64,000 nucleotides of DNA from Takakia lepidozioides (Eukaryota > Plantae > Bryophyta), in the NCBI GenBank assembly GCA_030704615.1, contig CM060733.1, positions 25,916,001-25,980,000 on the forward strand. The letters are read 5' to 3'. A program made the translations under genes and the position numbers. Below the pieces are notes generated by a model that worked only from the letters and a program-made list of their open reading frames with translations, did not search any database and was not told where the DNA came from. Positions 1-64,000 of this stretch are shown here, in pieces (the stretch's first letter is position 1; the number at the start of each line of letters is the position of its first letter).

Positions 1-1794
1 TGGAATCGGCAAGGGTTGTAACAGCCCCGCTTGCTTTTTGTACTCGCTCTGGTTTTGTTGGCATGTGGTGCATGTCTTGACATACTCCTCTACCTCCTCC
101 CTCAGTTTGGGCCAGAAATACTCTTTCTTCAAGAGTGCCGCAGTGCGCTTGGCTCCGCCGTGGCCCGCAAGCGGGCTATCATGGCATTCTCTCAAGAGAC
201 TATCTCTGATCCCTCCCTTCGGCACGTAGAGACGCTTTTGCTTATACCGGAGCAGTCCATTTTGCAAGTGGAATTGCGATTTAACCCCCCTCCTCAAGTC
301 CTGCAATACGGACTTCGCCAGCTCATCCTTCTGGCAAGCCTTCCGGATCTTCCTTTGGAGCGCCGTCTCGCCCCTGTATACCAACAAGAGCTGTTGCTTT
401 CTACTTAAATCTTGTGTGTTTCCAACAGATGTCATGTCCTTGGTTATGGGGAATTGTGCCGGCAACGGATTGGCAGGAGTGACAAGTTTTGGGGACAACT
501 TGGGCTGCGTGGCAAAATACTTCACCGTAACATTGTCCGTGAACACCTTCACTGGGTTGGAACCAACATAGTGGCGCCAAAGCTCAAGACAGTGCACCAC
601 CGCCTTCATCTCTTTCTCGTGCGTCGGCCACCGTCGCTCCACTTCGTTCAGTTTCTTACTTTTGTAAGCCATTGGACGTCCATCTTGCATCAGTACACCC
701 CCAATCACAAAGTCCGACGCATCTGTATGAATCTCGAATGGCCGATCGAACTCCGGGATTTTCAAGACTGGAGCTTCCGCCATCCGCTGCTTCAATTCAG
801 CAAAAGCTTGGCCACACAAGGTGTTCCATACCCAGACTTTGGATCTACACAGAAGGTCTGACAACGGCCCCGCGATCTTGGCGAAATTTCTCACATACTT
901 CCGGTAATAGGAGGCGAGTCCTAGGAAGGATCGCACTCCCGGGACTGAAATCGGAGGCTCCCAGTCCAAGATCGCCCTCACCTTTCTGTCATCTATTTTG
1001 ATCCCATCCTGTGTAATCACATGCCCTAGGAACTCCACTTTTGTGACCCCGAATTCGCACTTTGAAGCTTTGGCATACAGCTTCCCTTCCCGCAATTTCT
1101 GGAACACCCTTTTGAGGTGCTCCGGGTGCTCCTCCTTTGTTTTCGAATACACCAAGATGTCGTCGATGTACACGATCACAAAGTCATCCAACCACTCCTG
1201 GAAAAGACTGTTCATCAGCGTGCTAAAGGTCGCGGGTGCATTGGTGAGCCCAAAAAGCATCATCAAGAACTCATATGAACCATACCTTGTCCTGCACGCG
1301 GTCTTCTCCTCATCTCCTTCCGCCACTCGAATTTGATGATAGCCGGAGCGCAGATCGATCCGGCTGAAATACTTCGCTCCTGCCAACCGATCGAAAAGGT
1401 CGTCGATCCTTGGCAAAGGATACCGGTTTTTGATAGTCACCTTATTCAAAGCCCTGTAATCGACACACATCCGCAGCGTCCCATCCTTCTTGTCTGCGAA
1501 TAGCACCGGGGCTCCGTAAGGTGACTTACTCGGCCGGATGTACCCCTTTGACATTAGATCTTTGAGCTGAGTCTTCAGCTCGACCAACTCTCTGTGGCTC
1601 AACCGGTAGGGCGCCTTGGCAGGCGGTTCCGATCCCGGTATCACCTCAATCTTGTGGTCAACTCCTCTTCGCGGTGGCAAGCCGCTTGGTAAATCCTCCG
1701 GCATCACATCATGGTATCTCTCCAAAATCCTCTTGATCCAATCTGGGCTCGGCTCCCCATCGCCTTCTCCCTTCACTTCTCTAATGTAAAGCAA
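1..1794 (-). CDS. pol: Pol (RT-RNase H-integrase N-terminus) of gypsy copy A, open to the window edge, shifted by one base from gag-PR
   Basis: Manual translation gives [14 protein letters not shown]...YPLPRIDDL...[11 protein letters not shown] (RT), an RNase H region, and an integrase HHCC (H..PLAGHGG...CTTCQQ). It is absent from the ORF track, consistent with no stop before position 1. Confidence 0.88.
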
Positions 1795-3476
1795 AACTGG
1801 GGCTCGTGTGCCTCCTCCACGGCCCACTCCCTTGCTGACAGAAGGTTTATTCGCCCTCCCAAGGGTTTGGGCGTTTCCAATACTCGTAAGACTTCGCCAC
1901 CATCCCCACATGGTACCGTGACTACTCTTTTGCGGCCATCTACGACCGCTCCGGATTTGCTCAAAAAGGTCATTCCCAAAATGAGATCCACTCCATCGAT
2001 CTCGCAAATGGTAAAGTTCTCACGTCCTTCCCATTTCCCCAGTTGAAGAGGGACATCGAACGCCAACCTCGTCACCAATTGCGGTTCTCCTTTGGCAGAA
2101 CGCACCTCAATAGAGGCCCCCACGTCACTTGTTGGGAGTCCCAGCTTTTGTGCCGTTGCCGGTGTCATGAAGGAGTGCGACGCTCCTGTGTCCACCAACA
2201 ATGACACGTTAGTTCCGGATATTATCCCATCCACGAACAATAACTGACTCCCTTTACGTAAGGCGCCAGTTTCCTGATAAAATTCACAAGAAAATTTGCC
2301 TACCTTGCAAGTCCTGGCGACCACCGCTTCCACCAAGCGACTGATGGTATCTTCTGACAGCTCTGTGGTCGCCCGAGTCATGTTCAATTGCCGGGGCTTC
2401 GTGCACTTCTTGGCCACGTGCCCGGGCTCCCCGCAATTGAAACACACTCCATCAAAGGTCGTCTTCTGTCCGCCATAGGCCGCTCCACCCGCTTTTCCTT
2501 TTGAAGCACCGGGTGCCGCCTTGACTTGTGAAGGCCCTCCCTTCGATTTCCACGTGCCATTGTCGCCGCGTGGCCTATCCCACTTCTTTTCCGGTCGGAA
2601 GGCGTCACCTTCCCGCCGGGTCTTCTTGTGGTTCAGCTCCGTACGGCCTTGTCTTTCACCCCTAGGGACATCCGAGAAACATTCAGCCCTCTCAATTGCC
2701 TCGTTCAAAGTCTTAGGTGGCTTCTCCTCCAACTTCCGCCTAGCCCATGGGGCCAGTCCCGCCACAAAGTTGAAGACCATTTCTGGTTCTGCCATGTCCG
2801 CGACTTCGAGCAACAGCACATTGAAAGCCTGGACATATCCCCGAATGTCATCTGTTTGCTTCAAATTCCTCATCTTGTCCCGGGCAAGCCAGGACGCGTT
2901 GAGGGGCACAAATTGCCTTTTCATCAATTCCTTGAACCCACTCCAATTCAAGGTTTCCGGGCTTGGGCCTTGGTCGTGAAGGCGTTTCTGCCACCATTGT
3001 TGAGCATAGCCCCTCAAATAGGTGGGAGCCACTTCCACCCGGTCCTCGTCACTCAACTTGGCCGCCCGGAAGTACTGCTCTAGCTCCAGGAGCCAGGTGT
3101 TGAGTGCCTTCCGATTTCGGACGCCCTCGAAGGTGCCGGGTTCCTTAGGCTTCACCTTAAATTTTGCCTTAGTGGAAGTGGCATTAGCCGCCTTCAACAC
3201 GTCTTTCAACGTCCCGCCAAATTGTGCCAACAACCCTTCCCAAAAGGCTGCCGGCATGGGAGGCATCTGTTCAGATTCCTCCCACTCTTGAGCGGCCTCG
3301 TTTTCGGAGACATGCATCGCTTCCTCAAACGGCCGCCTCGGTGACACGTCGCCCCCATTGGGCTCACCAGGATCATCATCTTTTGGGCCGTTCCGCTTTC
3401 GCTTTGGCTTGCCCGACCCCATGATGAGGCCAATCCCAAGGACGATCACGTACTGAACTCTAAGCTCTGATACCAA
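1773..3476 (-). CDS. gag: Gag-protease of gypsy copy A (first ATG at 3422)
   Basis: Retrotrans_gag-like region, CCHC knuckle [14 protein letters not shown], and aspartic protease motif [10 protein letters not shown] ... DLILGM. Confidence 0.92.
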
Positions 3477-3477
3477 G

Positions 3478-3879
3478 TGTCGCGCACCTCAGTTCGGTAA
3501 GCTCCCCTTCAAGTCATAGTTGCTAGCTTGATGCGCGCGCCTAACTCCCAACCTGGCCGCCGGACCAACTTGGAGCTTCGGCTGCTCACCGGGGCATACC
3601 CAAGACTCCCCACAACTCCCACCACGAGGTCTCCGCCCCCATGGTGAGTCCTATGCCACCCCCACTAATTCCCGCTAAGCTACCACCACCCCTTGTGGAG
3701 CCACCCCCACCGCAACCCGGTGTGCGGGGCTCCACCTAGTGAGCGCCTCCGCCTCCTTGAGTGCCTTGGGCACTCAAGGGTGCTTCAGCCCCCCATACCT
3801 ATCGCTGCCGCTGCCCCCACCACAGGGGCAGTCCCTCATGTGTCCCAACCCCCTGCCCTCAAGGCAAAGGGCCGCGACA
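3478..3879 (-). repeat. 5' LTR of copy A with an internal deletion of ~320 bp
   Basis: Same termini (TGTCGCG...CGCGACA) as the 722-730 bp LTRs of copy B but only 402 bp long. The missing part includes the CTATATATAC TATA-like box. Confidence 0.9.
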
Positions 3880-4053
3880 CTTTTTGACTAGGAAGATAAC
3901 CTTGAACCAACCGCGTTGATTGCTCTGAGGCTGACCTGTCGTCTTGGTTTGGTGCTCATAACCAAAATGGGAATAATGCTTTTCTTTCACTATCATCTGA
4001 CGGACATATTTTGGACGGGGATGGTTTTCAAATCTTCACCACTATTACGTTTA

Positions 4054-5830
4054 GGGGGTTCAGTGATGCCTACCCCCCCGTGGTGCCTCTCCCGTGCAAC
4101 GCCCCCACCGGGTCGCCGTCTTGCGTGTCACAAGCCCCCTTGCGACGCGGAGGGCGTCGCAGACATAATGCCAAAATCCACAAAAACGTGGATTTTGGCC
4201 GAGTCCTCCATTGCGACGCCTGAGGCGTCGTAATGGAGTAAAAAATTTAAAAAAAACATCGCAGCTTGGCTGTGACGAACTGGGGGTCGGCCCCTGGGTG
4301 TGACCTTTCGGACGTCGGTTGGGAGGTTGCGACCAGTGTTGGGCGGTTCTTGCATTTGTGAAGGAACCTTCGGTTGCGGTTCCACAATTATTTCAAGAGA
4401 CGGTTCCGGATCCGGTTCCGGTTTTTTTTTATTGAGCCAGTTCCGGTCCGGTTCCGGATCCAACTTTTAAACATGGGGGCGGTTCCGGTTACCGGTTAGT
4501 TGCTGATAAAAACCATCGGTTCCGGTTAGGTTCCGATTCTATTTTTAAAATATATTTGTTTAATTTAATTAGATTTAAAATATTTTATCAGTCTGGTAGA
4601 TTAAATAGCAGTGTATTCACATATTTGAACTAAAATCCAACGATTTTGTTAGTTTTCACTAAACACAAAAAAACAAACAAAAATACTCTAAATAAACTAG
4701 TAGAAGAAAATGGGTAAAATTTTATGGGTTGAAAGTACTATTCAGCTACCTGGCAAGTATTGGCATCTTCAAACATTTTATTAATGAACTTAGCCAAGAT
4801 ATCATGGAGCTGGAGATTGAACCCATCATGGCCTTCAAGCATTGAACCCATAATCTCATGAGCTTGAGAGCATTAAATAAGTTTTGCCCTGGGCCCACCA
4901 GCCCACCAAGGGGTCAAGAACCGGAACCTGTTTTTATCCCCATGCGTCCCGGTTCTCCGGTTCTCACACCTAGCAGGAACCGCCGGTTCGGTTCTGCGCC
5001 GATCCCCATTGGCAGGTTCCGGTTCCGGGTCAGGTTATGTAGGAATGGGCCCGGTTCCGGTCCGGTTCCGGTTAACCTGAACCTGAACTGGCGGTTAACC
5101 TGGGTCCCGGCGGGTAACCGCCCAACACTGGTTGCGACGCCTTAGGGCGTCGCTTCAAGCACCCCGGAAATAAATAAATAAATAAATAATAAATAAATAA
5201 TATCATTTTAAATCCAACACCCTGGGCGTCGCTGTTGAGTTTTTTTGTTTTTTTTTTATAAGTCATTTTTGGCGACGCATGAGATGACTTAATCATGTTT
5301 TGGTTTTCGCAGTAGAGGGTGCAGGAAAAACGACGCCAGAGACGTCACTTACATTTGAGCAACGCGAGGAGTGTCGCTTTGAGGTCCCGATGAGCAACGC
5401 TCGTATGCATGAACTACCTTATGTACAATTAAATCATGAGTTTGTGTGTAAGTTCTATAACTAATATGTTGGTTATTGTGAAGTGTTTTACTAAGTGCAT
5501 AATCTAGTGGTCTTGAATTCTAATTTGCATAACAACACATTGAATGAATTATGAACTAGTGTCGGCTACTTGCAAACACATGCTGTTATGTTTGACACTA
5601 CGTGGCAAGTGTGTGTCCCGGTATTTTTTGAATCGTGTGGAGTCCCGCCATTTTTAAACCCGTGTGTATCCCGGCATTTTTCAAAATTCAAAATTAAAAA
5701 AAATCAAAAGCGGCGTCGCATTTAAAAAGCGATTCCCCCCCCCCCCCCCCTTATGGCCATAGCGACGCCCCGGCGTCGCAAGTGGGGATTTTCAGGGGGT
5801 TGGATCTGTGACCTCCCAAGGGGGGGCCCA
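4054..5830. mobile_element. Non-coding repeat element rich in the palindrome TGCGACGCC-N2-4-GGCGTCGCA (boundaries approximate)
   Basis: Motif copies near 4141, 4212, 5133, 5330 and 5761; the same motif family occurs at 16710-17700. Confidence 0.55.
4334..5130. mobile_element. hAT-type non-autonomous element (MITE)
   Basis: 15-bp TIRs CAGTGTTGGGCGGTT/AACCGCCCAACACTG, a perfect 8-bp TSD GTTGCGAC (4326-4333, 5131-5138), and many subterminal GGTTCCGG repeats. Confidence 0.92.
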
Positions 5831-32244: not shown

Positions 32245-32499
32245 TCAAGTGCAAAAGGAAAGAGAGAAGACTCCGGCCGAAGTCGGCGTAACTAAGAGCC
32301 ACTTCACATTGCGGCTACTGCCCCCTTTCGGGGTAGGCCTTGTGGGACACCAAGTACCCGGGGTACATAGGGTACCTATGGTATCGACATAGATTTGGAT
32401 TCTAGTTGTCGTTTGTTGGTAATAATAGTTATGAGGGATCGGAGTGTCGTGAGGTGGATTGCTTTGAAACACTTATGATGGGGGGATGGGGATTTTGAA

Positions 32500-33200
32500 G
32501 TTGTCATGTATAGCGTTGATACTGGCATTATGTATGTTACCTCTAGTACCGGCAGTGATGACGGTTAGTGGGCCGGTGATCTAGCCTCTACGGCGGATTG
32601 CAAGGATTAGTGTGACATATTTTTGTCGTTTTTCTAAGATCGAGTCATTGGGGTAGCGATCATTACAGTATGTAAAATGGATGGTGAGTTGTGGGGATGG
32701 TGTAGTGGGTGGTGGGGTGTTAGTGGGTAGGCCTTGGACAAGGAGAATATCAGGGCACAGTCTGGCGGGGCAGGTGCATGGTGAATGGGTACATGTACAT
32801 GGGAGCAGCCATCATGGTGGTATAGTGTGGTCTGGTGGTCGGCCTTGGTAGGTGCCAGCATTAATGAGTGAGAACCACCTGGTTTTAGCGTAGCTCAGAA
32901 AAAGTTTATGGATGTGCTAAACTGCATGGTTATAACGAGTGATATGAAGGCCATGAATGACTGGATGGGTACATTGGCTAAGGAGGTGTGGCCAGGTATC
33001 GCGTTCATGGTGGGTATTTGAGCATAGTGGGCAATATCGGGATAGGAAAAGATGTGGCCAGAAGATGTGTTTACGTTGGTTGCCCATGTATTGGGCGTAC
33101 CTGAATTTGAGTGTTTGTCGGATTTGTGCATCGGTAGTGGCTTTGGTGCTAGACGTGGTTTGATAGCTCATGATGGAGGATTGTGGACTGGGTCAAGTTT
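32500..33200 (-). pseudogene. LINE CCHC knuckle and restriction-like (PD-(D/E)xK) endonuclease
   Basis: CPLC...DTWPHLLSQC...HITRYNHAV (RHN-type motif), then RL(C)PDILLVQG...IH--FTYCNDRY...EKRQKY..L...RRG*...VITAGTRGNIH. Confidence 0.8.
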
Positions 33201-33261
33201 CTGAATGTGGACTTTGGTGTGGCTAATATATGTTGTTGGTTTGCTTCATGGGTGATAGTGG

Positions 33262-33870
33262 TCATAAGATTACAGATTGGTTTGGGTGCGGGGGGGGGTC
33301 TGAGACTCGGTGTATAAACCAAAAAGGATGGGTATGAGCGATATGAATAGGGTCATTTGAAAGGTCCACTGGGGGTTTAGAGGCGCATGTCTGAGCAAAT
33401 AGATCCGCCACTTCATTACCTTTAATGCTAGTGTGCGAACGGACTTTGAGGAATTGGATAGGGTGGCTTTTGGAAATAACGAGGTTGACAATGGTTGTAA
33501 TGAGGTTGCGATCTGGGTGGTGATGGTGGGAGGAGAGGCGGGATATGTGGTTTCGTATAAGAAAGAGTGAGGTAAGGCTATATGTGAAGATGTAGTATGG
33601 AGGAGGGAAGGCATCTAGCAGGGAGAGTGCTTCGAAGATGGCCATAAGTTCAGCTCGTAATATGGTGGCAGGGCCAAGAAGTCTGAGAGCAGTGCCCTGG
33701 TTAGTGGAGGCGTGGTATATTCCGTAGCCAACATTTGGTTTGGTGAGGGATCCGTCAGTATAATGGGAGTTAGATGGAGGATATCTGAGGGGGATAGTTT
33801 GTCGGTATAGTGAGGGAATAGGAGGTGTGGGTTTTGGTGTGATAGCCTTGGGGGGGGGGGGGGGTGGCAA
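33262..33870 (-). pseudogene. LINE RNase H domain
   Basis: YTDGS...TILRAELMAIFEAL...IFT(Y)SLTSL...KVRSHTSIKGNEVADLFA; the third catalytic Asp appears mutated to Tyr. Confidence 0.9.
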
Positions 33871-34149
33871 CGCCCTTTCCCCAACTCTGTTTGGTTTGAT
33901 TTTGGGAAATGAAATGGTTGGTGCATAGTCATAGGAGGTGGTGGATGAACGATGTGTGTTGGTGGGGGTTGGTAGCCTTCATTTTGTGCGTCAAGGTTAG
34001 CAGTTTTTTTAAGTAGCTTAGAAAGAGCATCGGTATATTGATGGGGGAGGAGTGTTGGACATGCAAAATTAGGGTTAGGGTGGGTTCCCTTTGTCTAAGG
34101 TATTTGGGAAAGTGGTGGGGTATGCACATATTTAAGCTGACTAGGTTCG

Positions 34150-34700
34150 ATTGTGGCTAGTAAATTAGTCCCTGTCGGGAGATGTAGGAAAGGGTGGGAG
34201 TCATTGGGTGATTGTTGTTGGGTGAGTATGAGTATTGTGAGGGCGTGGGGGGATGAATGAGCAGCGAAGCGTGCCCATTGGAGAGCTTCATGAGTGGGGG
34301 TGTCGGGGGGGGGGTGAGCAAGACCTCTGCCAGCCCAGGTGTGCTGAGTGGCAGTACCCGTGGCTTCGAAGATACAATCCCTGTGGTGTGGACTTGCAAA
34401 TGTAATGAATTCCATAGGGCATGTGAGCGGGCTGGAGTAATATGAGTAAGTAAGTTGGAATGAATCGATGAGTAGTGCTAGAATGTCCTTGGGTATAGTA
34501 TTATGAGCGCATGCCATTGTTAGCATGCTGAGGGTACGTGGTTTCTTGGGGGGGGGGGGCATCTTTGAGGTATTGTTCTGCAAGCCAGCATAGTTCAGTG
34601 GCAAAGTCTTGTTTGGGGGGTTGTAAGATTTGTGAATTAGTGTTTGTGGTGGAATATTTTTCTCAAAGTCATGTTAGCCTGTCAGTGGGAATAAGACCAA
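34150..34700 (-). pseudogene. LINE-encoded PCIF1/CAPAM-like N6-adenine methyltransferase domain
   Basis: TIPKDILALLIDSFQLTYSYYSSPLTC..FITFASPHHRDCIFEATG...WAGRGLAHPP...ALTILIL aligns by eye with the PCIF1 pattern LP..VF..L...F.V.FECFASPLNC.F..YCS.F.D.D..FGS.G...GSFEANPPF...PLSFIVF. Confidence 0.6.
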
Positions 34701-34972
34701 TAAACAGCCGTTTTGAGCGTAGATATTAGAGAGGCGGGGGCCTATACGGACCATTGGAGGGTCATGATCTATGTCTTTATCAGGGTTGCATTCGGTCATG
34801 CATATGCGTATGTTAGGAGCAATTAACGAGTTATGTATGTTTCGGATGTTGTCATGGTTTTAGTCATGGTTAACTAGAATTACCTACTTCTAGTTAATAA
34901 GGACATTTTGGATATTTATATTTGTATTTTGTGTGTTGGGACTTCATTTGGTCTCATATACCAAGTGAGGTG

Positions 34973-35702
34973 TGTCGCGCACCTCACTTCGGTGAGCTCC
35001 CCTTCAAGTCATAGTTATTCGCTTTGATGCGCGCGCCTGACTCCCAACCTGGCCGCCGGGCCAACTCGCAGCTTCGGCTGCTCACCGGGACATAACGGTC
35101 CCCCTTTGCTCTCCCGAAAGACCCTCCACCTATTTGGGCCTAGTGGAATTCCCTTTGGTAGATGGCAGTCCGGAACAGCTCCCCACTCTTTGGTCGCTTT
35201 CCGGCTCGCTTGCTTACTCACTAGTTTTTTGGACCCAACGGGCTTGCACCGTTCTCGGGGTTACTACTCCCTATATATACTTCTGTAGCTGTCCGCGGGG
35301 GTTTCACAACCAGCCATGCCATTTTATGGGCGAACCACCACGGAGACCCTCGATTCCCGGTGGTGAGTCGCGGTGAGTCTTGGCCCACTCACCGCGGCCC
35401 TAATGGACCGTGATGAGTCCCAAGACTCCCCACGACTCCACCTCGAGGTCTCCACCCCATGGTGAGTCCTATGCCACCCCACTAAGTCCCGCTAGCTACC
35501 ACCACCACCCCTTGTGGAGCCACCCCCCGCAAACCCGGGGTGCGGGGCTCCACCTAGTGAGTGCCTCTGCCTCCTTGAGTGCCTTGGGCACTCAAGGGTG
35601 CTTCAGCCCCCCATACCTATCGCCGCTACTGCCCTGCCCCCACCACAGGGGCAGCCCCTCATGTGTCCCGACCCCCTGCCCTCAAGGCAAAGGGCCGCGA
35701 CA
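34973..35702 (-). repeat. 3' LTR of copy B
   Basis: TG...CA termini, adjacent PPT, near-identical to 41253-41974. Confidence 0.95.
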
Positions 35703-38700
35703 CCCACCCCTACCAACAGGGAGTCGATGTCCTCATCGATTTGTCGTTTTGTAGAAACGAACATCCAAGTTGTGGCGTCCCACATCAAGGAGTTTGTTTC
35801 CGCACCATGGCGTCCCATGGCAAAAAACCAAACCCCCACACTTGACTCTACTCCTCCACTAGCTAGTTCGGCCCGACTTCCTCAAGTCCCGGCCAAGGGG
35901 GAGCCTCTCCAGCTCCTCCCAGTGCACTCTTCTTGGCCTATCTTCAAGCCAAGGAACGATCCTCCCCGAGGATCGAATCGCCTTAACTGCAACAACATTG
36001 CTTGCGATCGCTCATGATGCCGCTTTTGGCATCACCTTGAGCAAGGGTTCACCTGGAACCCTCTTTGACTAGGAAGATAACCTTGAACCAACCGTGTGCC
36101 CCAATCACTACAATTGGGTCCGCCTTGGAATGCTGGCCTGAGGTACGGGAACACGCCGAAGCCGCACTACGACTTCGTCCTGAGGCTACACGATTATAGT
36201 ACGTGAAACGGAAGCAGTAGCTTCCTTCCGCGTTAGCCTGCATTACAAGGCAACCCCCTCGGTAGCGCAGTTTATATACGCGCACAACGCTCTAGATGCC
36301 GCACTAAGCCTGCCAGATCGCACTATCACGTGAACTCCCCAAGAACTCGCAAGTTTTCCTTGCCCCTTGGATGGGAGTCACCCGATTTCGGCACTGCGCA
36401 AACTCACGATTAACCCAATTTACCTCTCCCCCACTTTTGTAAGCTAGCATGCATTCTACACACACTAGCTAACCAACCATACCATGCATCACCATTCCAA
36501 ACACAATAGGACGCACAATATGGGAACCCATTTTCCTTATAACAAATTTTTGTACAATACAAATTTTTGCAATCGGATTCCTGAGCTAGCTAAGCCGGGC
36601 TAAGCATGCATTTCCTCCCCCACGCTCCAAGGTTGATGTCCCTCAACGGTTCTTCCGCTTTTGAGGTCGCCCTTCGAAAACTGCAACCCGCCTCGGATGC
36701 GTTTCCCATTTCTGAGGCACGCACCCAAGATGCCTCCACATGATGATAGCCCTTCCATTTGACGAGATACTCCGTTTCTCGGTTCCTGAACCTCCTCCTC
36801 GACTTAAGTATTGCCTCCACCCTCCACCTCGTACTCAGGTTCATTTCATGATCCAACAGCATAGATGGTGGACGCAACACTTGATCCGATTCGGACGCGC
36901 TTCATCTTTGAAGTAAGGCTTCAAAGGGAGACATGGAATACTGGGTGCACCTTGCAGTTGCCGGCAGCTCCAATTCATACACATCCTCATTCATAACCTT
37001 CCGAATGCGAAAGGGTCCCGCATACGGAGGTACGAACTTCGGAATCACTTCCGAGGTAGTCGGAAATTCTTGATGTTCAACAGACCTCTGTGCCTGCCTC
37101 AAACTTCACTTCCCTCCGCTTCCGATTCGCCTGCCTTTCATACCGTTTCTACCGTTTCCTAGCTTTGGCAATATTGTACTTTGCGAGCTTCAACAAACGC
37201 TCGCGTTCTTCCAGTACCGCCGCTACTGCGGGTTCCTCAACGTCCTGGGCGGCCCACTTGTCGGCACCAGAGTGCTTTTCCATAGACCAATACGAAAGGG
37301 GAAACTCCCGTTGCGGAGTGTTCTGTGTTATTATACACAGAACTCTGCCGCGTCTAAGTGTTCCATCCAGTCTTCTGATTGGTCTGCCGACACGTAATTC
37401 CGCAAGAATTGCTTCACTACGGAATTCATTCTTTCCGTTTGGCCGTCCTTCGTAGGTCGGAAGGCGGTGCTCATCTTCAGCCTCGTCCCCATCTTCTTCC
37501 AAAGTGCTCTCCTCCAAATTTACTCGTAAACTTTGGATCGCGGTCCGAGACAATATCCTTCGGGACTCCATGATGCTTTAAGACGTGGGCGAAGTAAAGT
37601 CGCCCTGTCTCCTGCGCCGTTGCCGTCTCCTTGGTGGGGATGAAATGGCCCATTTTACTGAACCTATCTACCACCACCATGATTGCATCGAATCCTTTTG
37701 ACAGCGGCATAGCAGTCATGAAATCCATCGAGACGCTTTCCCAAGTCCCCTCTGGAATCGGCAAGGGTTGTAACAGCCCCGCTTGCTTTTTGTACTCGCT
37801 CCGGTTTTGTTGGCATGTGGTGCATGTCTTGACATACTCCTCTGCCTCCTCCCTCAGTTTGGGCCAGAAATACTCTTTCTTCAAGAGTGCCGCAGTGCGC
37901 TTGGCTCCGCCGTGGCCCGCAAGCGGGCTATCATGGCATTCTCTCAAGAGACTATCCTGATCCCTCCCTTCGGCACGTAGAGACGCTTTTCTTATACCAG
38001 AGCAGTCCATTTTGCAAGTGGAACTGCGATTTAACCCCCATCCTCAAGTCTTGCACACGCACGGACTTCGCCAGCTCATCCTTCCGGCAAGCCTTCCGGA
38101 TCTTCTTTGGAGCGCCGTCTCGCCCTTGTACACCAACAAGAGCTGCTGCTTTCTACTTAAAGCATCGGCCACCACATTGTCCCGTCCCGGTTTGTACTGG
38201 ATATCCACGTCGAACACCGCCAAAGTATCTTGCCACCTAAGTTGTTTTGGGGACAACTTGGGCTGCGTGCAAAATACTTCACTGTGACATTGTCCGTGAA
38301 CACCTTCACTGGGTTGGAACCAACATAGTGGCGCCAAAGCTCAAGGCAATGCACCACCGCCTTCATCTCTTTTTCGTGCGTCGGCCACCGTCGCTCCACT
38401 TCATTCAGTTTCTTACTTTCGTAAGCCACTGGACGTCCATCTTGCATAAGTACTTCACCCATCGCGAAGTCCGACGCATCTGTATGAATCTCAAATGGAC
38501 GATCGAACTCCGGATTTTCAAGACTGGAGCTTCCGCCATCCGCTGCTTCAATTCAGCAAAGCTTGGCCACAAAGGTGTTCCATGCCCAGACTTTAGATTT
38601 ACACAGAAGGTCTGATAGCGGTCCCGCAATCTTGGCGAAATTTCTCACATACTTCCGGTAATAGGAGGCGAGTCCTAGGAAGGATCGCACTCCCGGGACC

Positions 38701-41252
38701 GAAGTCGGAGGCTCCCAGTCCAAGATCGCCCTCACCTTTCTGTCATCCATTTTGATCCCATCCTGTGTAATCACATGCCCCAAGAACTCCACTTTCGTGA
38801 CCCCGAATTCGCACTTTGAAGCTTTGGCATACACTTCTTCCCTTCTCGCAATTTTGGAACACCCTTTTGGTGCTCCAGGTGCTCCTCCTTTGTTTTCGAG
38901 TACACCAAGATGTCGTCGATGTACACGATCATCATCCAACCACTCCTGAAAAAGGCTGTCATCAGCGTGCTAAATGTCCTGGTGGGGCATTGGTGAGCCC
39001 AAAAGGCATCACCAAGAACTCATATGAACCATACCTTGTCCTGCACGCGGTCTTCTCCTCCTCTCCTTCCGCCACCCAAATTTGGTGATAGCCGGAGCGC
39101 AAGTCGATCCGGCTGAAATACTTCGCTCCTGCCAACCGATCGAAGATGTCGTCGATCCTTGAGAAAAGGGTACCGGTTTTTTATAGTCACCTTATTCAAG
39201 CCCTGTAATCACACCATCCGCAGCGTCCCATCCTTCTTGTCTGCAAATAGCACCGGGGCTCCGTAAGGTGATTACTCGGCCGGATGTACCCCTTTGACAT
39301 TAGATCCTTGAGCTGAGTCTTCAGCTCGACCAACTCTCTGTGGCTCAACCGGTAGGGCCCTTGGCAGGCGGTTCCGATCCTGGTATCACCTCAATCTTGT
39401 GGTCAACTCCTCTTCGCGGTGGCAAGCCGCTTGGTAAATCCTCCGGCATCACATCCTGGTATTTCTCCAAAATCCCCTTGATCCAATCTGGCTCGGCTCC
39501 CCATCGCCTTCTCCCTTCACTTCTCTAATGTAAAGCAAAACTTGGGGTTCGTGTGTCTCCTCCACGGCCCACTCCCTTGCTGACAGAAGGTTTATTCGCC
39601 TCCCACGGATTTGGGCGTTTCTGACACTCGTAAAACCTCGCCACATTCCACATGCAGCGTGACTACTCTCTTGCGGCCATCTATGACCGCTCCGGATTTG
39701 CTCAAAAAGGTCATCCCCAAAATGAGATCCACTCCATCGATCTCGCAGATGGTGAAGTTCTCACGTCCCTCCCAACTCCCCAGTTGAAGAGGATATCAAT
39801 CGCCAACCTTGTCGCCAACTGTGGTTCTCCTTTGGCAGAACGCACCTCAATAGAGGCCCCCACGTCACTTGTCGGGAGTCCCAGCTTTTGTGCCGTTGCC
39901 GGTGTCATGAAGGAGTGCGACGCTCCTGTGTCCACCAACAACGACACATTAGTTCCGGATATTATCCCATCCACGAACAATAACTGACTCCCTTTTTTAA
40001 GGCGTCAGTTTCCTGATACAACTCACAAGAAAAGTTGCCTACCTTGCAGTCCTGGCGACCACCGCTTCCACCAAGCGACTGATGGTATCTTCCGACAGCT
40101 CCGTGTCGCCCGAGTCATGTTCAATTGCGGGGCTTCGTGCACTTCTTGGCCATGTGCCCGGGCTCCCCAATTGAAACCACTCCATCAAAGGTCGTCTTCT
40201 GTCCGCCATAAGCCGTTCCACCACGCTTTTCCTTTCAAAGCACCGGGTGCCGCCTTGACGTGTGAAGGCCCTCCCTTCGATTTCCACGTGCCATTTTTGC
40301 CGCGTGGCCTATCCCACTTCTTTTCCGGTCGGAAGGAGTCACCTTCCCGCCGAATCTTCTTGTGGTTTAGCTCCGTATGGCCTTGTCTTTCACCCCTAGG
40401 GACATCTGAGAAACATTCAGCCCCTCTCAATAGCCTCGTTCAAAGTCTTGGGTGGTTTCTCCTCCAACTTCCGCCTGGCCCATGGGGCCAGTCCCGCCAC
40501 AAAGTTGAAGACCATTTTGGTTCTGCCATGTCCGCGACTTCGAGCAACAGCACATTGAAAGCCTGGACATACCCCCGAATGTCATCTGTTTGCTTCAAAT
40601 TCCTCATCTTGTCCCGGGCAAGCCAGGACGCGTTGAGGGGCACAAACGTCTCTTCATCATCAATTTCTTGAACCCACTCCAGTTCAAGGTTTCCGGGCTT
40701 GGACCTCGGTCGTGAAGGCGTTTCTGCCACCATTGTTGAGCATAGCCCCTCAAATAGGTGGGAGCCACTTCCACCCGATCCTCGTCACTCAACTTGGCCG
40801 CCCGGAAGTACTGCTCTAGCTCCAAGAGCCAGGTGTTGAGTGCCTTCCGGTTTCGGACGCCCCGAAGGTGTCGGGTTCCTTAGGCTTCACCTTAACTTTG
40901 CCTTAGTGGAAGTGGCATTAGCCGCCTTCAACACATCTTTCAACGTCCCGCCAAACTGCGCCAACAACCCTTCCCAAAAGGCGCCGGCATGGGAGGCATC
41001 TCTTGGTTTGTCGGAGCTCTCAAGGATTCCTCGGGCTCCGACTCCTCGGATTCCTCCCGCTCTTGGGCGGCCTCGTTTTCGAAAACATGCATCGCTTCCT
41101 CAAACGGCCGCCTCGGTGACACGCCGCCCCCATCGGGCTCACTGGGATCATCATCTTTTGGGCCGTTCCGCTTTCGCTTCGGCTTGCCCGACCCCATGAT
41201 GAGGCCAATCCCAAGGACGATCGCGTACTGAACTCTAAGCTCTGATACCAAG

Positions 41253-41974
41253 TGTCGCGCACCTCACTTCGGTGAGCTCCCCTTCAAGTCATAGTTACTC
41301 GCTTTGATGCGCGCGCCTGACTCCCAACCTGGCCGCCGGGCCAACTCGGAGCTTCGGCTGCTCACCGGGACATAACGGTCCCCCCTTTGCTCTCTCGAAA
41401 GACCCTCCACCTATTTGGGCCTAGTGGAATTCCCTTTGGTAGATTGCAGTCCGGAACAGCTCCCCACTCTTTGGTCGCTTTCCGGCTCGCTTGCTTACTC
41501 ACTAGTTTTTGGACACCAACGGCTTGCACCGTTCTCGGGGTTACTACTCCCTATATATACTTCTGTAGCTGTCCGCGGGGGTTTCACAACCAGCCATGCC
41601 ATTTTATGGCGAACCACCACGGAGACCCTCGATTCCCGGGTGAGTCGCGGTGAGTCTTGGCCCACTCACCGCGGCCCCAATGGACCGTGATGAGTCCCAA
41701 GACTCCCCACGACTCCCACCTCGAGGTCTCCACCCCATGGTGAGTCCTATGCCACCCCCACTAAGTCCCGCTAAGCTACCACCACCCCTTGTGGAGCCAC
41801 CCCCACCGCAACCCGGTGTGCGGGGCTCCACCTAGTGAGTGCCTCCGCCTCCTTGAGTGCCTTGGGCACTCAAGGTGCTTCAGCCCCCCATACCTATCGC
41901 CGCTACTGCCCCCCCACCAGGGGCAGCCCCTCATGTGTCCCGACCCCCTGCCCTCAAGGCAAAGGGCCGCGACA
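41253..41974 (-). repeat. 5' LTR of copy B
   Basis: TG...CA termini, adjacent PBS TGGTATCAGAGC, internal TATATATA box. Confidence 0.95.
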
Positions 41975-42339
41975 AGGTGTCAAACCTCACTTGGGACATG
42001 GGGATGGGTTTTCCCCTTGTGAGGGTTGAGGAGGGCTCATCTTCTTGTAGTGATAATGAAAGTGAACACAATGGAAATACTCCACTCATGAATCCACTCA
42101 ATCACATAAACTATTATGGCATAGCTTTCTAGGATTGTGTGCTTAGAATGTATGGTGGACAACGATGTATGTTGTGGCACGATGCTTAGGTGCATGACAT
42201 TGTCTTCAGGTTGTGCGGGAGAAACGTGTTGTTGATGAATATGAGTTAGGTAATTGGTGTTGGTGCGTTTGTGGAAGGTGGTAAAGAGGGTGAGATTGTG
42301 GTCAGGGTCGCAATCATCGTGTGGGTCAAACATGTCGTC

Positions 42340-42480
42340 TTCAATCTACCATGTGTTATCGTTTGATGGGTAACCAGCCCATTTACAATAATAAAATGTA
42401 TCCACACAAGTGGCTCCGAAGGGGTCTATTGACGTTTGGGTTTTAATTCCAAGAATAGCTTCTATGATGAAGGCATTGGG
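42340..42480 (-). pseudogene. Chromodomain within the LINE ORF
   Basis: AFIIEAILGIK...FYYCKWAGYPSNDNTW fits the chromodomain consensus (F/Y.VE.IL...Y.VKW.GY...NTW). It lies outside copy B's LTR/TSD. Confidence 0.75.
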
Positions 42481-42973
42481 ATTTTCACGGTGGTGCGGGC
42501 AAATTTGGGAGGACGTTGCTGGGGTTATTTGGAGATGGGTAGGGGTACCTGACATATTGTTACATGGAGTGGGTGGAGGTTGGGGATTGTCGTGGCATGG
42601 TGTGGTATTTTGAGTGGGTGGCGAGGAAGGTGGGTTGGGGTCGGTGAGTGCGGGATTGTTAGTATGATATGAAGCTTTAAGTTTCTGGAGGATGGAGGCA
42701 GCTGGGGCAGATCTGTATTGGGGTAACAGATCTTGAGGTGTGTGGGGGGAATGTGAGCAGGGGGTCTCACAATCAAGGATGCATGATGCTGAGGGGTGGC
42801 AGAATAGGGTGCGAAGATGATGTAGGTATCGACTGGTTTTGGCCGTAGATCTGGAATGCTTAAGGGTGAATTCAGTTGGTGTCAGGAGTCGATGCCCCGT
42901 GGCGGTGGTGAGTTGAATGAGAGTGGTAATGTGTCGCTCTTTAAAATAAATAAGGATGGGTACTTTTAAGTTT

Positions 42974-43995
42974 TTATTTAGGGTGGGAAATTTCTAATTG
43001 AGGGAGAAAAAGGCGGGTGAGCCAAGCGCGTTCTAAAGGTGAGGAGGTGTTAGGATAGTCTGGTAAGTCAGTTTGTATGCTAATTTCCATTTGTCGTAGA
43101 ATGAGTAATGTACGCGCAGTAGAGGAATGTAGGCACGCCTGTGGGTGCAGTGCAGATAGAGAGTATAGTCCATTATATTTTAGGGCAAGAAATTTGAGGA
43201 GTCCCTGATAGATTTGGCCTAGGCGTCCAGGATCATTGAGGGCCTCAATCAAGGTGCGGGCATATGAGATGATTTAGGGGCTAGAGCCAATCCCGAAGCT
43301 GTCGGTTGGGAGTTGGGTGAAGGCATTGGGGGTACTGATAGGCAGTCCACATACACGCTTTGTAAGTTGGATAATGCTCTTGTCGAGTTTTTTAATGTCC
43401 GGGAGGGAGAAGGGTGCGGCGTGGAACAAATATTGTACTTGGGTTTTTAGTACTGATTGTATGATTGATAATTTGGGTCTAATGGCAATTGAGGATTTCA
43501 GGAGAGCCAAGCTTTTATTGGCTAGTTTGGATGGCGTGGCGTCTTTCTGAACGTGTCAGGTGAGGGAAGGGACCAGCTGGATACCCATGTAAGTGTATGG
43601 CTCATCTGGCCCGAGGAAGGGGAAAAGTTTATTCTGTAATGTACATAGATCAGTTTACAGTGGGAGACGATAGCAGTTTTGGTGAGTCGGCTATGGTGCG
43701 TTGCCGCGGTGATAGCACATTTGTGAAGACTAAGTTCCATACCGGACCATTGATTGAAGCAGTATAGTTTGGTGACTTGTCGGTTTAGGTGTTGCGGTTT
43801 ATGTGCAAGGATGGTGAGGTCATCGGCATATGCTGCAGCGGAGATTTCACTCGAGGAAGTTTTGTATTGATATCCAAGCTTACCATGGGCTATCCATTTG
43901 AATAAGGGTTCCAGAAAAATAATGAATAGGTAGGGGCTTAAGGTGTCTCCTTGAATAGTGTCACGTAAGATTGGAATGGGTGGGGTAAAGCCGTA
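42974..43995 (-). pseudogene. LINE reverse transcriptase (C-terminal half) and thumb
   Basis: TPPIPILRDTIQGDTLSPYLFIIFLEPLFKWI..G..GY...ISAAAYADDL...WSGMELSLHKC, then CGLPISTP...FGIG and LIEALNDPGRLG. Confidence 0.9.
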
Positions 43996-44109
43996 GTATA
44001 CACCAGAGTATTCAGTAGTACTATTTGTCTAGATATTTCCTATTTCCTATACATGTAGCTCATAGCTACTACCATTGGCTTACTAGCAGACTCTTTATTA
44101 CCACACAAC

Positions 44110-61289: not shown

Positions 61290-64000
61290 GAGCTGGCAAT
61301 GGTGCCTAGTTCCACTTGCGACTGAACTCCAACCTGACATATAACAACCCATACAGGAGTCGTCGACTTGTACTTCTCCACCATTCCAGTCCTATTTATC
61401 ATGACACCTCACATGATTGTTCAAAGGAGATAAAGAGCAATTTCTTTTTTTTCTCCAGAGCTTTTGTCAATATTTACTATATCATCAGGAGTCAGGGAAT
61501 GGTGCTTTATAACGTCCGCGGAGAAAACCAGACAAGAAAACTAGAGAGAGGAGTCCCTGCACCTGTAAATATACCAAGGGAATTTTAGACCAACTTGAGG
61601 ACGCAAATTCTATAGCAAGTGTAGCACAGCCGATCTCCACTTTACTTCTAGTTATGTTCTGATTTTATTCTGAATTCATGACCTGTTAAATTTTTCCAAG
61701 AAGCCTACTGAAACTTAATCTCCTTTGCCTTGATTGATCAACTACAGTCAGCCGGATTCTGTGATAACGATCAGACATCCTGGAAGCATACCGCTCCGAA
61801 GGACTCCTCTCTCGTCTGTCTCCACGCCCTGCACTGACAAAAGTTGGAACCACAATAATGAACCGCAGCTGCCTTTTGTTTCGGATCATTTAGAAAAACT
61901 CAACATCGATATCGAGGTACCGGAAAATTTGGACTGAAACTCCCAGTTTACTCTTCTCACGAGGGCGAACCTTCATGCCTGCGATTTTATGAGTACTGTG
62001 GAGGTGTCGGCGCTGTATCCTCAGTAGTCAAACACACTGGACCTCCCGAGAGCCGATGAAACGTGCAAGGAAACACACGCACCCGCCGTCAAAAGTGTTG
62101 GTGGTGGAAAAGGTAGCTCTTCCCAGCCTTTTGGACCACCAATCAGCCATGCTCACATCGTCACAGTTGTTTGTTCGTCCCTAATAATAAGAAGACAGCA
62201 GCGCTAGCATGGTACACTTGGATCTGGATCTCAGTGCATTTGTCTTCAATCCCTTATATCGCGCACTAAAAGTCGGCTCAAGAGCCGGACACTTTATAGA
62301 GCAGATTCAATGACTGGGCACAGGGAATCCTGCGGCAGCTGATTCCTTACGATGTTCCAAACAACGTTCCAAAAAGTCGGGAAGGAATTAGCACTTCTAT
62401 TGCTTGGCTTTTGTGACGGTTTTTCATCGTGGGGGGACCAGAGGGAGAGATGAAGGAGACATACTGATACCCAGGCCACACCTACTTGCCTCAAAGCAGG
62501 GCCCTTCGCGGGCAGTCAGGCCGAGGCCGTTCCTACGCTGCCCGGCCGGGCGTCCGCTTGACTTAGTTTAACGCAATAGAAACTACGTTATGGAGATGGT
62601 AGTGCGTTCCTCGAATGCTGTAGCCTGTAGTAGGGCGCCACCAATGTGTGAAGGCCCCATGGGAGCAGGAAAGGATGATAGAACTCTACCATGACATCAC
62701 CCTTTGCCTTGCTGGATCTTAGCTACCATTCCCTGTTCTTCAAACTGGGTCCCGCCAAGGCAAGGATGTGGGTGTGGCCGCTTGCCTTGCAGTGAAGACG
62801 CCGTTTCCGACTAGCCTCCTGCTAACTGAGGCAAATGCATTGTGTGGCCTGGCTATGAGACTGGCAGCTGGGCAATAGAGTTTACTTTATTTGTTAGATG
62901 ATATACATGTCACCCATGCTCAGATTGGACCAGTTCACCTACTTCAATTGGGGTCAATCACATAGAGTACCTTATGAAGAGTATCTTAGATATACATTAG
63001 TAACAAGAAGGTTTCTTCAAACTCAGACCTGGAATTCCAAGTGCTCTCTTTGAAGAACTCATACTCAGGTCACTTGCAGGGGCCAGGGAGCAAAGTAGGG
63101 CCACTTTATACACGCCACAAGCGAGCCCCACAAAATGTGGTGGTGGTTGGTCATTGGAGTATGTAATTTGGCCTTTGGGCGGATACTTCACAAATGGGAT
63201 TTCAATGGAAAACTTAATGTCCATGTGGCAGTGTAATTGAAGTTTCAGCAACTTCAAATGTATTGAAGGTGTTCTTTCCTTGCTCTGTAATTCACTGGAC
63301 GTTAAAGAAACTTTATCCTTTCCTTGCCATTCATTAACCCCCACCTACCAATACCTAAATTAGACTTGGTGAAGGGAGTTTCCTTTCTCAATAGCCGTGA
63401 GGCAAAGCATTGCAGAGAAAGGAAATTCTTTATTGCCCAAAAGGGCTTTTGATCTTTTTGAGAAGACAATTGCACCATCATGGTTTGGTTGGACTCTCGA
63501 AGCATAATTAATTAGCAAGTGAAACCTACGTCTGCTACAAAAACACAGCATGATTGACTGGTCCCCTCAATGAGTGACTCAGATTATATACACAATCAAA
63601 TGCTGGAAAAGGGCTAGAGGCTGCCCATTAAGTTACCCATGTCGAGAGAGTCACAAATTGAGTCAATTCGACCTATACAAGCGAGAAAAATATTCTTGTA
63701 CATTCTACATTCTTGTACATTTCAGCATCAATGTCAAAATCCTGTTACTCCCATACTCCCATACATTAAAAATATTTAAAACAAAATCTTGTTGTTGGAC
63801 TCATGTAATGAACTCTACAATATAAGTCATTGAATTAACATCATATAAATCGAATCATAGGTAGCTGTAGAGGATAATCCTATTAGAAAGAGCCCCACCA
63901 AAATCACATTCCTTAAGAAAACCCCTAAAATGTCGCCTTAAAACAAGACAGAGAAATAAAAGTGCTGGTTCCTACTAGGGTCAAACTTGGCCAGCCAGAT

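Follow-up and report, generated by a model that had tools for sequence, protein, structure and literature searches.

A PCIF1-type domain in a dead Dualen/RandI-like LINE of the bryophyte Takakia lepidozioides

The stretch of DNA analysed here, called the window throughout, comprises 64,000 nucleotides (nt) of Takakia lepidozioides (assembly GCA_030704615.1, contig CM060733.1, positions 25,916,001 to 25,980,000) and carries on its minus strand, from ~44090 to 32261, a non-LTR retrotransposon (LTR, long terminal repeat), i.e. a long interspersed nuclear element (LINE), which is truncated at its 5' end and split by a Ty3/gypsy chromovirus. Its domains follow one another in the order reverse transcriptase (RT), chromodomain, a domain resembling the cap adenine methyltransferase PCIF1 (CAPAM), RNase H, CCHC zinc knuckle and restriction-like endonuclease (RLE). 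We consider it probable that this is a dead copy of an abundant Dualen/RandI-type LINE and that its PCIF1-type domain is, most likely, non-catalytic or binds in a non-canonical manner. LINEs are usually thought to be limited to RT, nuclease and sometimes RNase H. Here, an abundant and widely dispersed LINE lineage appears to have long retained a captured cap adenine methyltransferase domain, with one branch carrying a chromodomain as well, which would make it, after DIRS1, another independent instance of PCIF1 having been taken over by a retroelement. The window copy itself is a clear nested example of this lineage and nothing further.

The middle domain and its relation to PCIF1

A preliminary description of the window had noticed a block-by-block likeness between the domain in the middle of the LINE and PCIF1, and had put its size at ~180 amino acids (aa). 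The domain turned out to be larger, i.e. ~240 aa (34850-34128), and is delimited as follows:

34098 to 34850, minus strand: PCIF1/CAPAM-type methyltransferase-fold domain of ~240 aa, placed by profile and fold matches of its relatives

In the window, motif I of this domain reads YYSSPLTCP and is followed by RDCIF.ATG and, as motif IV, by GRGLAHPPP, with the reading frame shifting near 34670 and 34523. The window piece 34604-34098 scores 14.9 bits (E 0.02) with the Pfam family PCIF1_WW (PF12237), which is below the curated cut-off of 31.1 bits, and the window peptide by itself has no match among the sequences of the PDB. A word-indexed protein search confined to 0.55-1.75 times the query length was empty as well, an outcome that this length window deprives of weight. 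With the in-frame piece 34523-34098, phmmer finds 115 relatives at E <= 1e-3 (best 1.3e-34); relatives, numbered here P0001 and so on, that lie above the PF12237 cut-off are P0081 (49.4 bits), P0134 (47.8), P0137 (40.5), P0136 (40.2) and P0016 (39.6), and all of these except P0081 are from the same clade as the window domain. A family profile made from 37 sequences, compared with 177,635 PDB sequences, matched PCIF1 only (6irv/6irx, E 9e-9), and the HMMER alignment reproduces the block pattern noted before, placing FsSPLtc on FASPLNC, rDaiFGatG on TDGYFGSRG and GaglahPp on GSFEANPPF.

The predicted fold agrees with this, as the preliminary description had anticipated. AlphaFold models were those of relatives and not of the broken window peptide, i.e. 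P0001:93-331 (pLDDT 89), the window's nearest relative with 54% identity to the window piece, and P0081:1291-1545 (pLDDT 86), a distant member. Both models match PCIF1 only: in Foldseek, each of them recovers the six entries for PCIF1/CAPAM with E values between 1e-9 and 3e-8, the next families following at 1e-3 or worse. VIA-align superposed the P0001 model on residues 417-646 of 6IRW/6IRV with a Z score of 16.1 and a root-mean-square deviation of 4.3 A over 206 residues, the next-best match being DIMT1/KsgA (Z 9.0). In the Atlas comparison, the nearest 30 feature clusters are all PCIF1_WW, and the structural template-modelling (TM) score is 0.75-0.76 to cellular PCIF1 clusters versus 0.50-0.55 to RT-linked clusters. 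The structural alignment begins at PCIF1 residue 416-417 and takes in nothing N-terminal of it, including the helical domain, and a WW domain was matched in none of the relatives scanned; in PCIF1, the WW and helical domains contribute to binding of the Pol II CTD and the cap.

These profile and fold comparisons show the middle domain to be genuinely homologous to the PCIF1 catalytic domain (human residues ~417-646). A chance match produced by a low-complexity, His/Pro/Thr-rich decayed peptide is what the poor score of the window piece alone on Pfam and its failure to find anything in the PDB might suggest, but relatives pass the curated Pfam cut-off, the family profile matches PCIF1, and two independent fold predictions choose PCIF1 far ahead of any other family, so that the probability of mere coincidence is virtually nil.

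One interrupted element of Dualen-type architecture

The LINE is present as two blocks, 42.0-44.0 kb and 32.0-34.9 kb, both on the minus strand and separated by a GC-richer insert, as seen from the listing of open reading frames (ORFs) and from composition. Its parts and the insertions within it are the following:

41980 to 44090, minus strand: upstream LINE block with the C-terminal part of the RT, thumb/linker and chromodomain (tblastn with P0081 and P0125, matching downwards from 44043; GC skew +0.45 to +0.5)
43211 to 44043, minus strand: RT from about motif 4 (QGDTLSP, YADD) plus thumb (Pfam RVT_1 4e-13 on 44028-43525)
42202 to 42555, minus strand: chromodomain plus C-terminal extension, with the aromatic positions F, W and Y present
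41980 to 42164, strand unassigned: one half of a short high-copy repeat, without counterpart in P0001; the gypsy element landed inside this repeat
34973 to 41974, minus strand: nested Ty3/gypsy chromovirus (LTR alignment, TG..CA ends, target-site duplication AGGTG, Pfam domains)
34842 to 34972, strand unassigned: other half of the short repeat (contig depth in DNA run X1)
33385 to 33792, minus strand: RNase H (Pfam RNase_H 1.9e-11 on piece 33870-33265; 40% identity to P0002 in a single frame)
32920 to 33033, minus strand: CCHC zinc knuckle plus RYN motif, which is RHN in relatives (alignment A3)
32390 to 32870, minus strand: RLE (PD ... catalytic K) and ORF end (motifs, colinearity with P0002)
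32261 to 32389, minus strand: 3' untranslated region with a 73-nt tail unit (32333-32261), then a TC-rich run (contig similarity boundaries, depth)

An important question is whether the two blocks belong to the same element. P0001, an uninterrupted 444-aa ORF on a metagenomic contig with Chromo and PCIF1_WW matches, is the best match to the window domain and is colinear with the LINE across the gypsy element, its residues 1-65 corresponding to 42396-42202 and its residues 65-306 to 34850-34128. Since P0001 aligns across both blocks, these constitute one element. The composition of the coding strand is also alike in the two blocks (C 33-35%, G 12.5-13%, i.e. a strong strand asymmetry), and the whole domain order is tiled by three relatives that are each a single ORF: P0140 (749 aa) with RT, a chromo-like segment and PCIF1, P0134 (734 aa) with a chromo-like segment, PCIF1 and RNase H, and P0002 (715 aa) with PCIF1, RNase H and CCHC/RLE. 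The order given in the preliminary description is thus borne out by Pfam matches, motifs and colinear relatives. Its statement that removing the gypsy element rejoins one LINE holds as far as the single element is concerned; a ~325-nt insertion, however, remains inside the LINE after this removal.

This insertion, located between LINE and gypsy, consists of 42164-41980 plus 34972-34842 (in minus-strand order), is bracketed by a 9-bp direct repeat, AACATACAT, at 42173-42165 and 34841-34833, and is a member of a family of short repeats that is very abundant: in DNA run X1, which is from the same organism as the window, the summed contig depth on it is 163,000-418,000 versus ~1,000-5,000 on the greater part of the LINE next to it. 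Clear terminal inverted repeats were not found in it. The flanking 9-bp repeat together with the high depth argues for an order of events in which the short repeat would have interrupted the LINE first, with the gypsy chromovirus later landing inside the repeat.

The ~325 nt between the blocks that have no counterpart in P0001, together with the occurrence of PCIF1-clade domains in DIRS1 elements (PMC4738411), could be taken to mean that the blocks are unrelated elements flanking the gypsy insertion, a possibility also raised in the preliminary description, or that the PCIF1-like piece is a DIRS-type fragment inside a LINE. Yet P0001 runs through both blocks without a gap, and the 325-nt stretch behaves as a separate high-copy repeat with a flanking duplication of its own. 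Moreover, RT, PCIF1 and RNase H occur within single ORFs of 2146 and 3192 aa, the PCIF1-like domain precedes RNase H and is followed downstream by an RLE rather than a tyrosine recombinase, and by Atlas TM score (0.75) it is closer to cellular PCIF1 than to RT-linked clusters. Two elements or a DIRS fragment are therefore hardly credible.

The domains surrounding the PCIF1-type domain can each be recognized. The RT of the window is 42% and 35% identical to residues 695-998 of P0081 (tblastn), and among solved structures the RT of P0081 has R2 as its closest match (1e-27), ahead of L1 ORF2p (2e-9). Pfam Chromo matches 42555-42349 at 5.4e-6 (26.7 bits versus a cut-off of 25.1), and the residues 1-65 of P0001 that align to the window chromodomain come from a protein with a Chromo match of 4.3e-9. 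BLASTP detects a diverged chromo-like segment, which is below Pfam detection, in P0140 and P0134, and Pfam finds no chromodomain pieces in the loci L001 and L006. At the C-terminal end, CCHC and PD..K motifs lie at ~33033-32490; in alignment A3, no variation is seen at C18, C21, H31, C36 and R48-H49 or at the RLE residues P108-D109 and K152. The RLE region is colinear with P0002 down to 32488, the C-terminal helix being recovered in another frame. A profile of the C-terminal regions matches R2 proteins (9nl2_A, E 2.9e-6), mainly over the CCHC-RHN segment, and the nuclease core would be a restriction-like endonuclease by its motifs only.

Longer relatives show what the truncated window copy may have lost. 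P0124 (3192 aa, on a contig with 63% GC) contains Exo_endo_phos, RVT_1, the PCIF1-like domain and RNase_H, with Exo_endo_phos (6.7e-7), i.e. an AP endonuclease (APE), upstream of the RT; this APE region has no match among PDB sequences. P0081 (2146 aa) contains RT, PCIF1_WW and RNase_H, has an N-terminal region that ends in SDHIPL and carries CCHC/PD..K at its C-terminus. The combination of APE with RLE is unique to Dualen/RandI (PMC9977147, PMC5029228), and because relatives carry both, the LINE family appears to be Dualen-type by architecture, RT phylogeny aside, in agreement with the preliminary suggestion of a Dualen/RandI-like arrangement. An intact element would thus encode a single ORF reading RT, chromodomain, PCIF1-type domain, RNase H, CCHC and RLE, to which complete relatives add the N-terminal AP endonuclease.

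As previously stated, the window copy is dead, and it is inert today. It is truncated inside the RT, with the RVT_1 match taking in only profile positions 119-193 of 205 and the truncation point placed to within ~50 nt, and it has accumulated at least 12 stop codons and ~6 frameshifts; the 1.3-kb stretch from RNase H to RLE has retained a single frame with six stops inside. No second copy of the LINE was found elsewhere in the window. That the LINE family is highly repeated follows from a DNA run in which 4149 contigs match 32250-34972 at >=80% and leave no bin uncovered. Other runs were taken to be RNA, a status that is itself a guess; their contigs are confined to the tail and to the RLE/CCHC part, the PCIF1-like part having none.

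Catalytic competence and kinship with other retroelements

Whether the PCIF1-type domain could still act as a methyltransferase depends on its motifs, by which an alignment of all relatives separates into two groups. In the window group, motif I reads SYYSSPLTCP and motif IV reads W.G.G.AHP(P/H/T), with a deletion of one to two residues at the aromatic slot of PCIF1; the position equivalent to the catalytic Asn is His in 67 and Tyr in eight of 84 distinct motif strings and Asn in none. The distant group, which includes P0081, P0124 and P0108, has ERFASPLN as motif I and reads HPPF, HPTF or TPEF, and NPEY or NPGY is kept in four distant Dualen-like relatives (P0108, P0097, P0095 and P0112). Conservation reaches 90% or more at the Pro in SPL, at the Asp and Phe in RD.IFG and at W.G; since the sequences are only 20-55% identical, this points to a domain under constraint. 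The residues aligned with FASPLN and D..FG of PCIF1, which are conserved in the window clade, are presumed to be the cofactor-side motifs.

The preliminary description had left open whether the HPP in motif IV is a product of decay, with intact copies reading NPP(Y/F). None of the 84 motif variants of the window clade has this Asn, and as HPP is found clade-wide, it is, by this comparison, a clade trait and not decay of the window copy. In PCIF1, the NPPF residues line the adenosine pocket (PMC13290413), and the N553A change in N553PPF inactivates the enzyme (PMC9178792). The 'adenine-methylation writer' proposed before is thus doubtful for the window clade, which lacks both the catalytic Asn and the aromatic. 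Because Asn has been replaced by His and the base-stacking aromatic has been lost, we favour a binding module over a canonical methyltransferase as the probable nature of the window-clade domain, with retained activity being unlikely. The domain would then bind nucleic acid or S-adenosylmethionine (SAM) within the LINE ribonucleoprotein, without catalysis or at any rate not in the canonical manner, and could keep hold of the RNA of its element, or of single-stranded nucleic acid, while target-primed reverse transcription proceeds. The chromodomain, like that of chromoviruses, would anchor integration to chromatin marked by methyl-lysine.

Alternatively, the domain could be an active N6-adenine methyltransferase that acts on the element's own RNA, at a cap-adjacent or internal A, or on nascent single-stranded cDNA, and in this way stabilizes, marks or shields it. 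The fold is kept, as are the residues aligned to FASPLN and D..FG; an LP.W/Y motif often places an aromatic at the site of the cap-contacting W588 of PCIF1 (PMC13290413), PCIF1 in vitro also methylates uncapped RNA and single-stranded DNA (PMC9178792), and there are the distant relatives with N-P-E/G-Y. In the window clade itself, however, no motif variant has the Asn and a deletion has removed the aromatic position, the corresponding loss of N553 is sufficient to inactivate PCIF1, the domain spans only PCIF1 residues 417-646, and the related DIRS1 domains have been judged inactive (PMC4738411), so that an active enzyme seems quite improbable here. A wider version, to which we would give only slender credence, is that possession of a captured PCIF1 catalytic domain is general among Dualen-type LINEs, that the N-P-E/G-Y lineages may be active N6-methyltransferases on their own capped RNA or single-stranded cDNA, and that the land-plant clade is derived and combines a chromatin reader with a pseudo-enzyme. 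If the N-P-E/G-Y lineages were indeed active, they would provide the first LINE-encoded nucleic-acid methyl writer.

Several points also weigh against a Dualen-type LINE with a non-catalytic binding domain as set out above. The cap site of PCIF1 is partly built by the helical domain, which is missing from the LINE domain. The conserved presumed cofactor-side motifs, together with a strongly conserved His, would fit an enzyme with altered chemistry too. The sequences that represent the family were taken from metagenomic contigs lacking annotation, and many are decayed copies, so that the motif counts in part reflect this decay; one C-to-T change is enough to turn His into Tyr. The Dualen assignment is derived from architecture rather than from an RT tree with reference clades, and the window copy is too truncated to show an AP endonuclease. 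Finally, that the domain holds RNA is a possible role and inferred only.

Comparison with known systems places the LINE family as follows. Dualen/RandI non-LTR retrotransposons were reportedly described by Kojima & Fujiwara in 2005 and are said to include Dualen-4b_cRei of Chlamydomonas and Dualen-1_GCr of a cryptophyte. With these, the window family shares a single large ORF, APE (in relatives), RT, RNase H, CCHC and C-terminal RLE, as well as an RT that is nearest to R2. In contrast, the host here is a land plant and not an alga, and the descriptions of Dualen elements consulted here, the original one of 2005 aside, mention no PCIF1-type domain or chromodomain between RT and RNase H; extra domains that have been described are a cysteine protease, a SET methyltransferase and a C48 peptidase (PMC5029228). 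In the literature, in which the 2005 description of Dualen was not covered, we found no report of a PCIF1-type domain in any LINE. Dualen-type elements would be abundant in a land-plant genome. An ORF upstream of P0081 (L007:579-1421, plus strand) has a weak match to Josephin, a cysteine deubiquitinase (E 1.3e-4, 22.3 bits, cut-off 26), which recalls the cysteine protease reported for Dualen.

With PCIF1/CAPAM (PDB 6IRV-6IS0), the LINE domain shares fold and motif order, i.e. a FASPLN-type motif I, D..FG and the motif IV loop after W.G. It differs in being part of a retrotransposon polyprotein, in lacking the WW domain and everything N-terminal to residue 417, and in reading AHPP without an aromatic where PCIF1 has ANPPF.

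The closest parallel among retroelements is the methyltransferase (MT) domain of DIRS1, which Iyer et al. (2016, PMC4738411) placed in the PCIF1 clade; its catalytic residues are substituted, and it was judged inactive. Both domains are PCIF1-derived, have been captured by a retroelement polyprotein, have substituted catalytic residues and have a predicted non-catalytic role, and a non-catalytic LINE domain would thus parallel that of DIRS1. In DIRS1, the MT domain follows RT/RNase H, whereas the LINE domain lies upstream of RNase H in an element that ends in CCHC/RLE; furthermore, DIRS1 is a tyrosine recombinase element, in contrast to a target-primed LINE with APE and RLE. That the LINE domain is nearer to cellular PCIF1 than to RT-linked clusters in the structural comparison suggests either a separate capture or slower divergence. 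Whether such a domain marks or holds the RNA or cDNA of the element, or mimics the host enzyme, is a question raised by these elements.

Chromoviruses likewise have a retroelement-borne chromodomain with aromatic positions that presumably steers integration to marked chromatin, but carry it at the integrase C-terminus of an LTR element rather than between RT and a PCIF1-like domain. One such chromovirus is nested in the window LINE itself.

Nested chromovirus, LINE tail and 3' flank

The chromovirus has LTRs at 34973-35702 and 41253-41974 (730 nt, TG..CA, 97.2% identical), is flanked by the 5-bp target duplication AGGTG at 34968-34972 and 41975-41979, and contains internal ORFs that match Pfam protease, RT_RNaseH, integrase and Chromo. 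With the element removed, its insertion site (34955-34972, 41980-41996) forms a near-perfect palindrome, CCAAGTGAGGT..ACCTCACTTGG. On metagenomic contigs with the window-clade LINE fragment P0116, an unrelated LINE with APE and RT (L001:6499-10706, minus strand) lies directly downstream in opposite orientation, a pairing that recurs in L002-L004.

At the 3' end of the window LINE, many contigs stop matching exactly at 32261 and 32333, and the summed depth of the tail is ~243,000 in DNA run X1. The 73-nt tail, with three small hairpins, folds no better than shuffled sequence (z -0.42), and the runs guessed to be RNA also show it, in a wide variety of contexts. The 3' flank (32240-32140) includes a tRNA T-arm-like sequence, GGTTCAATCC, for which ARAGORN and Rfam were negative. 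Just past the 3' end of the LINE, a 45-nt stretch (32100-32056, minus strand) recurs with 91% identity at 63282-63325 on the plus strand, 31 kb off.

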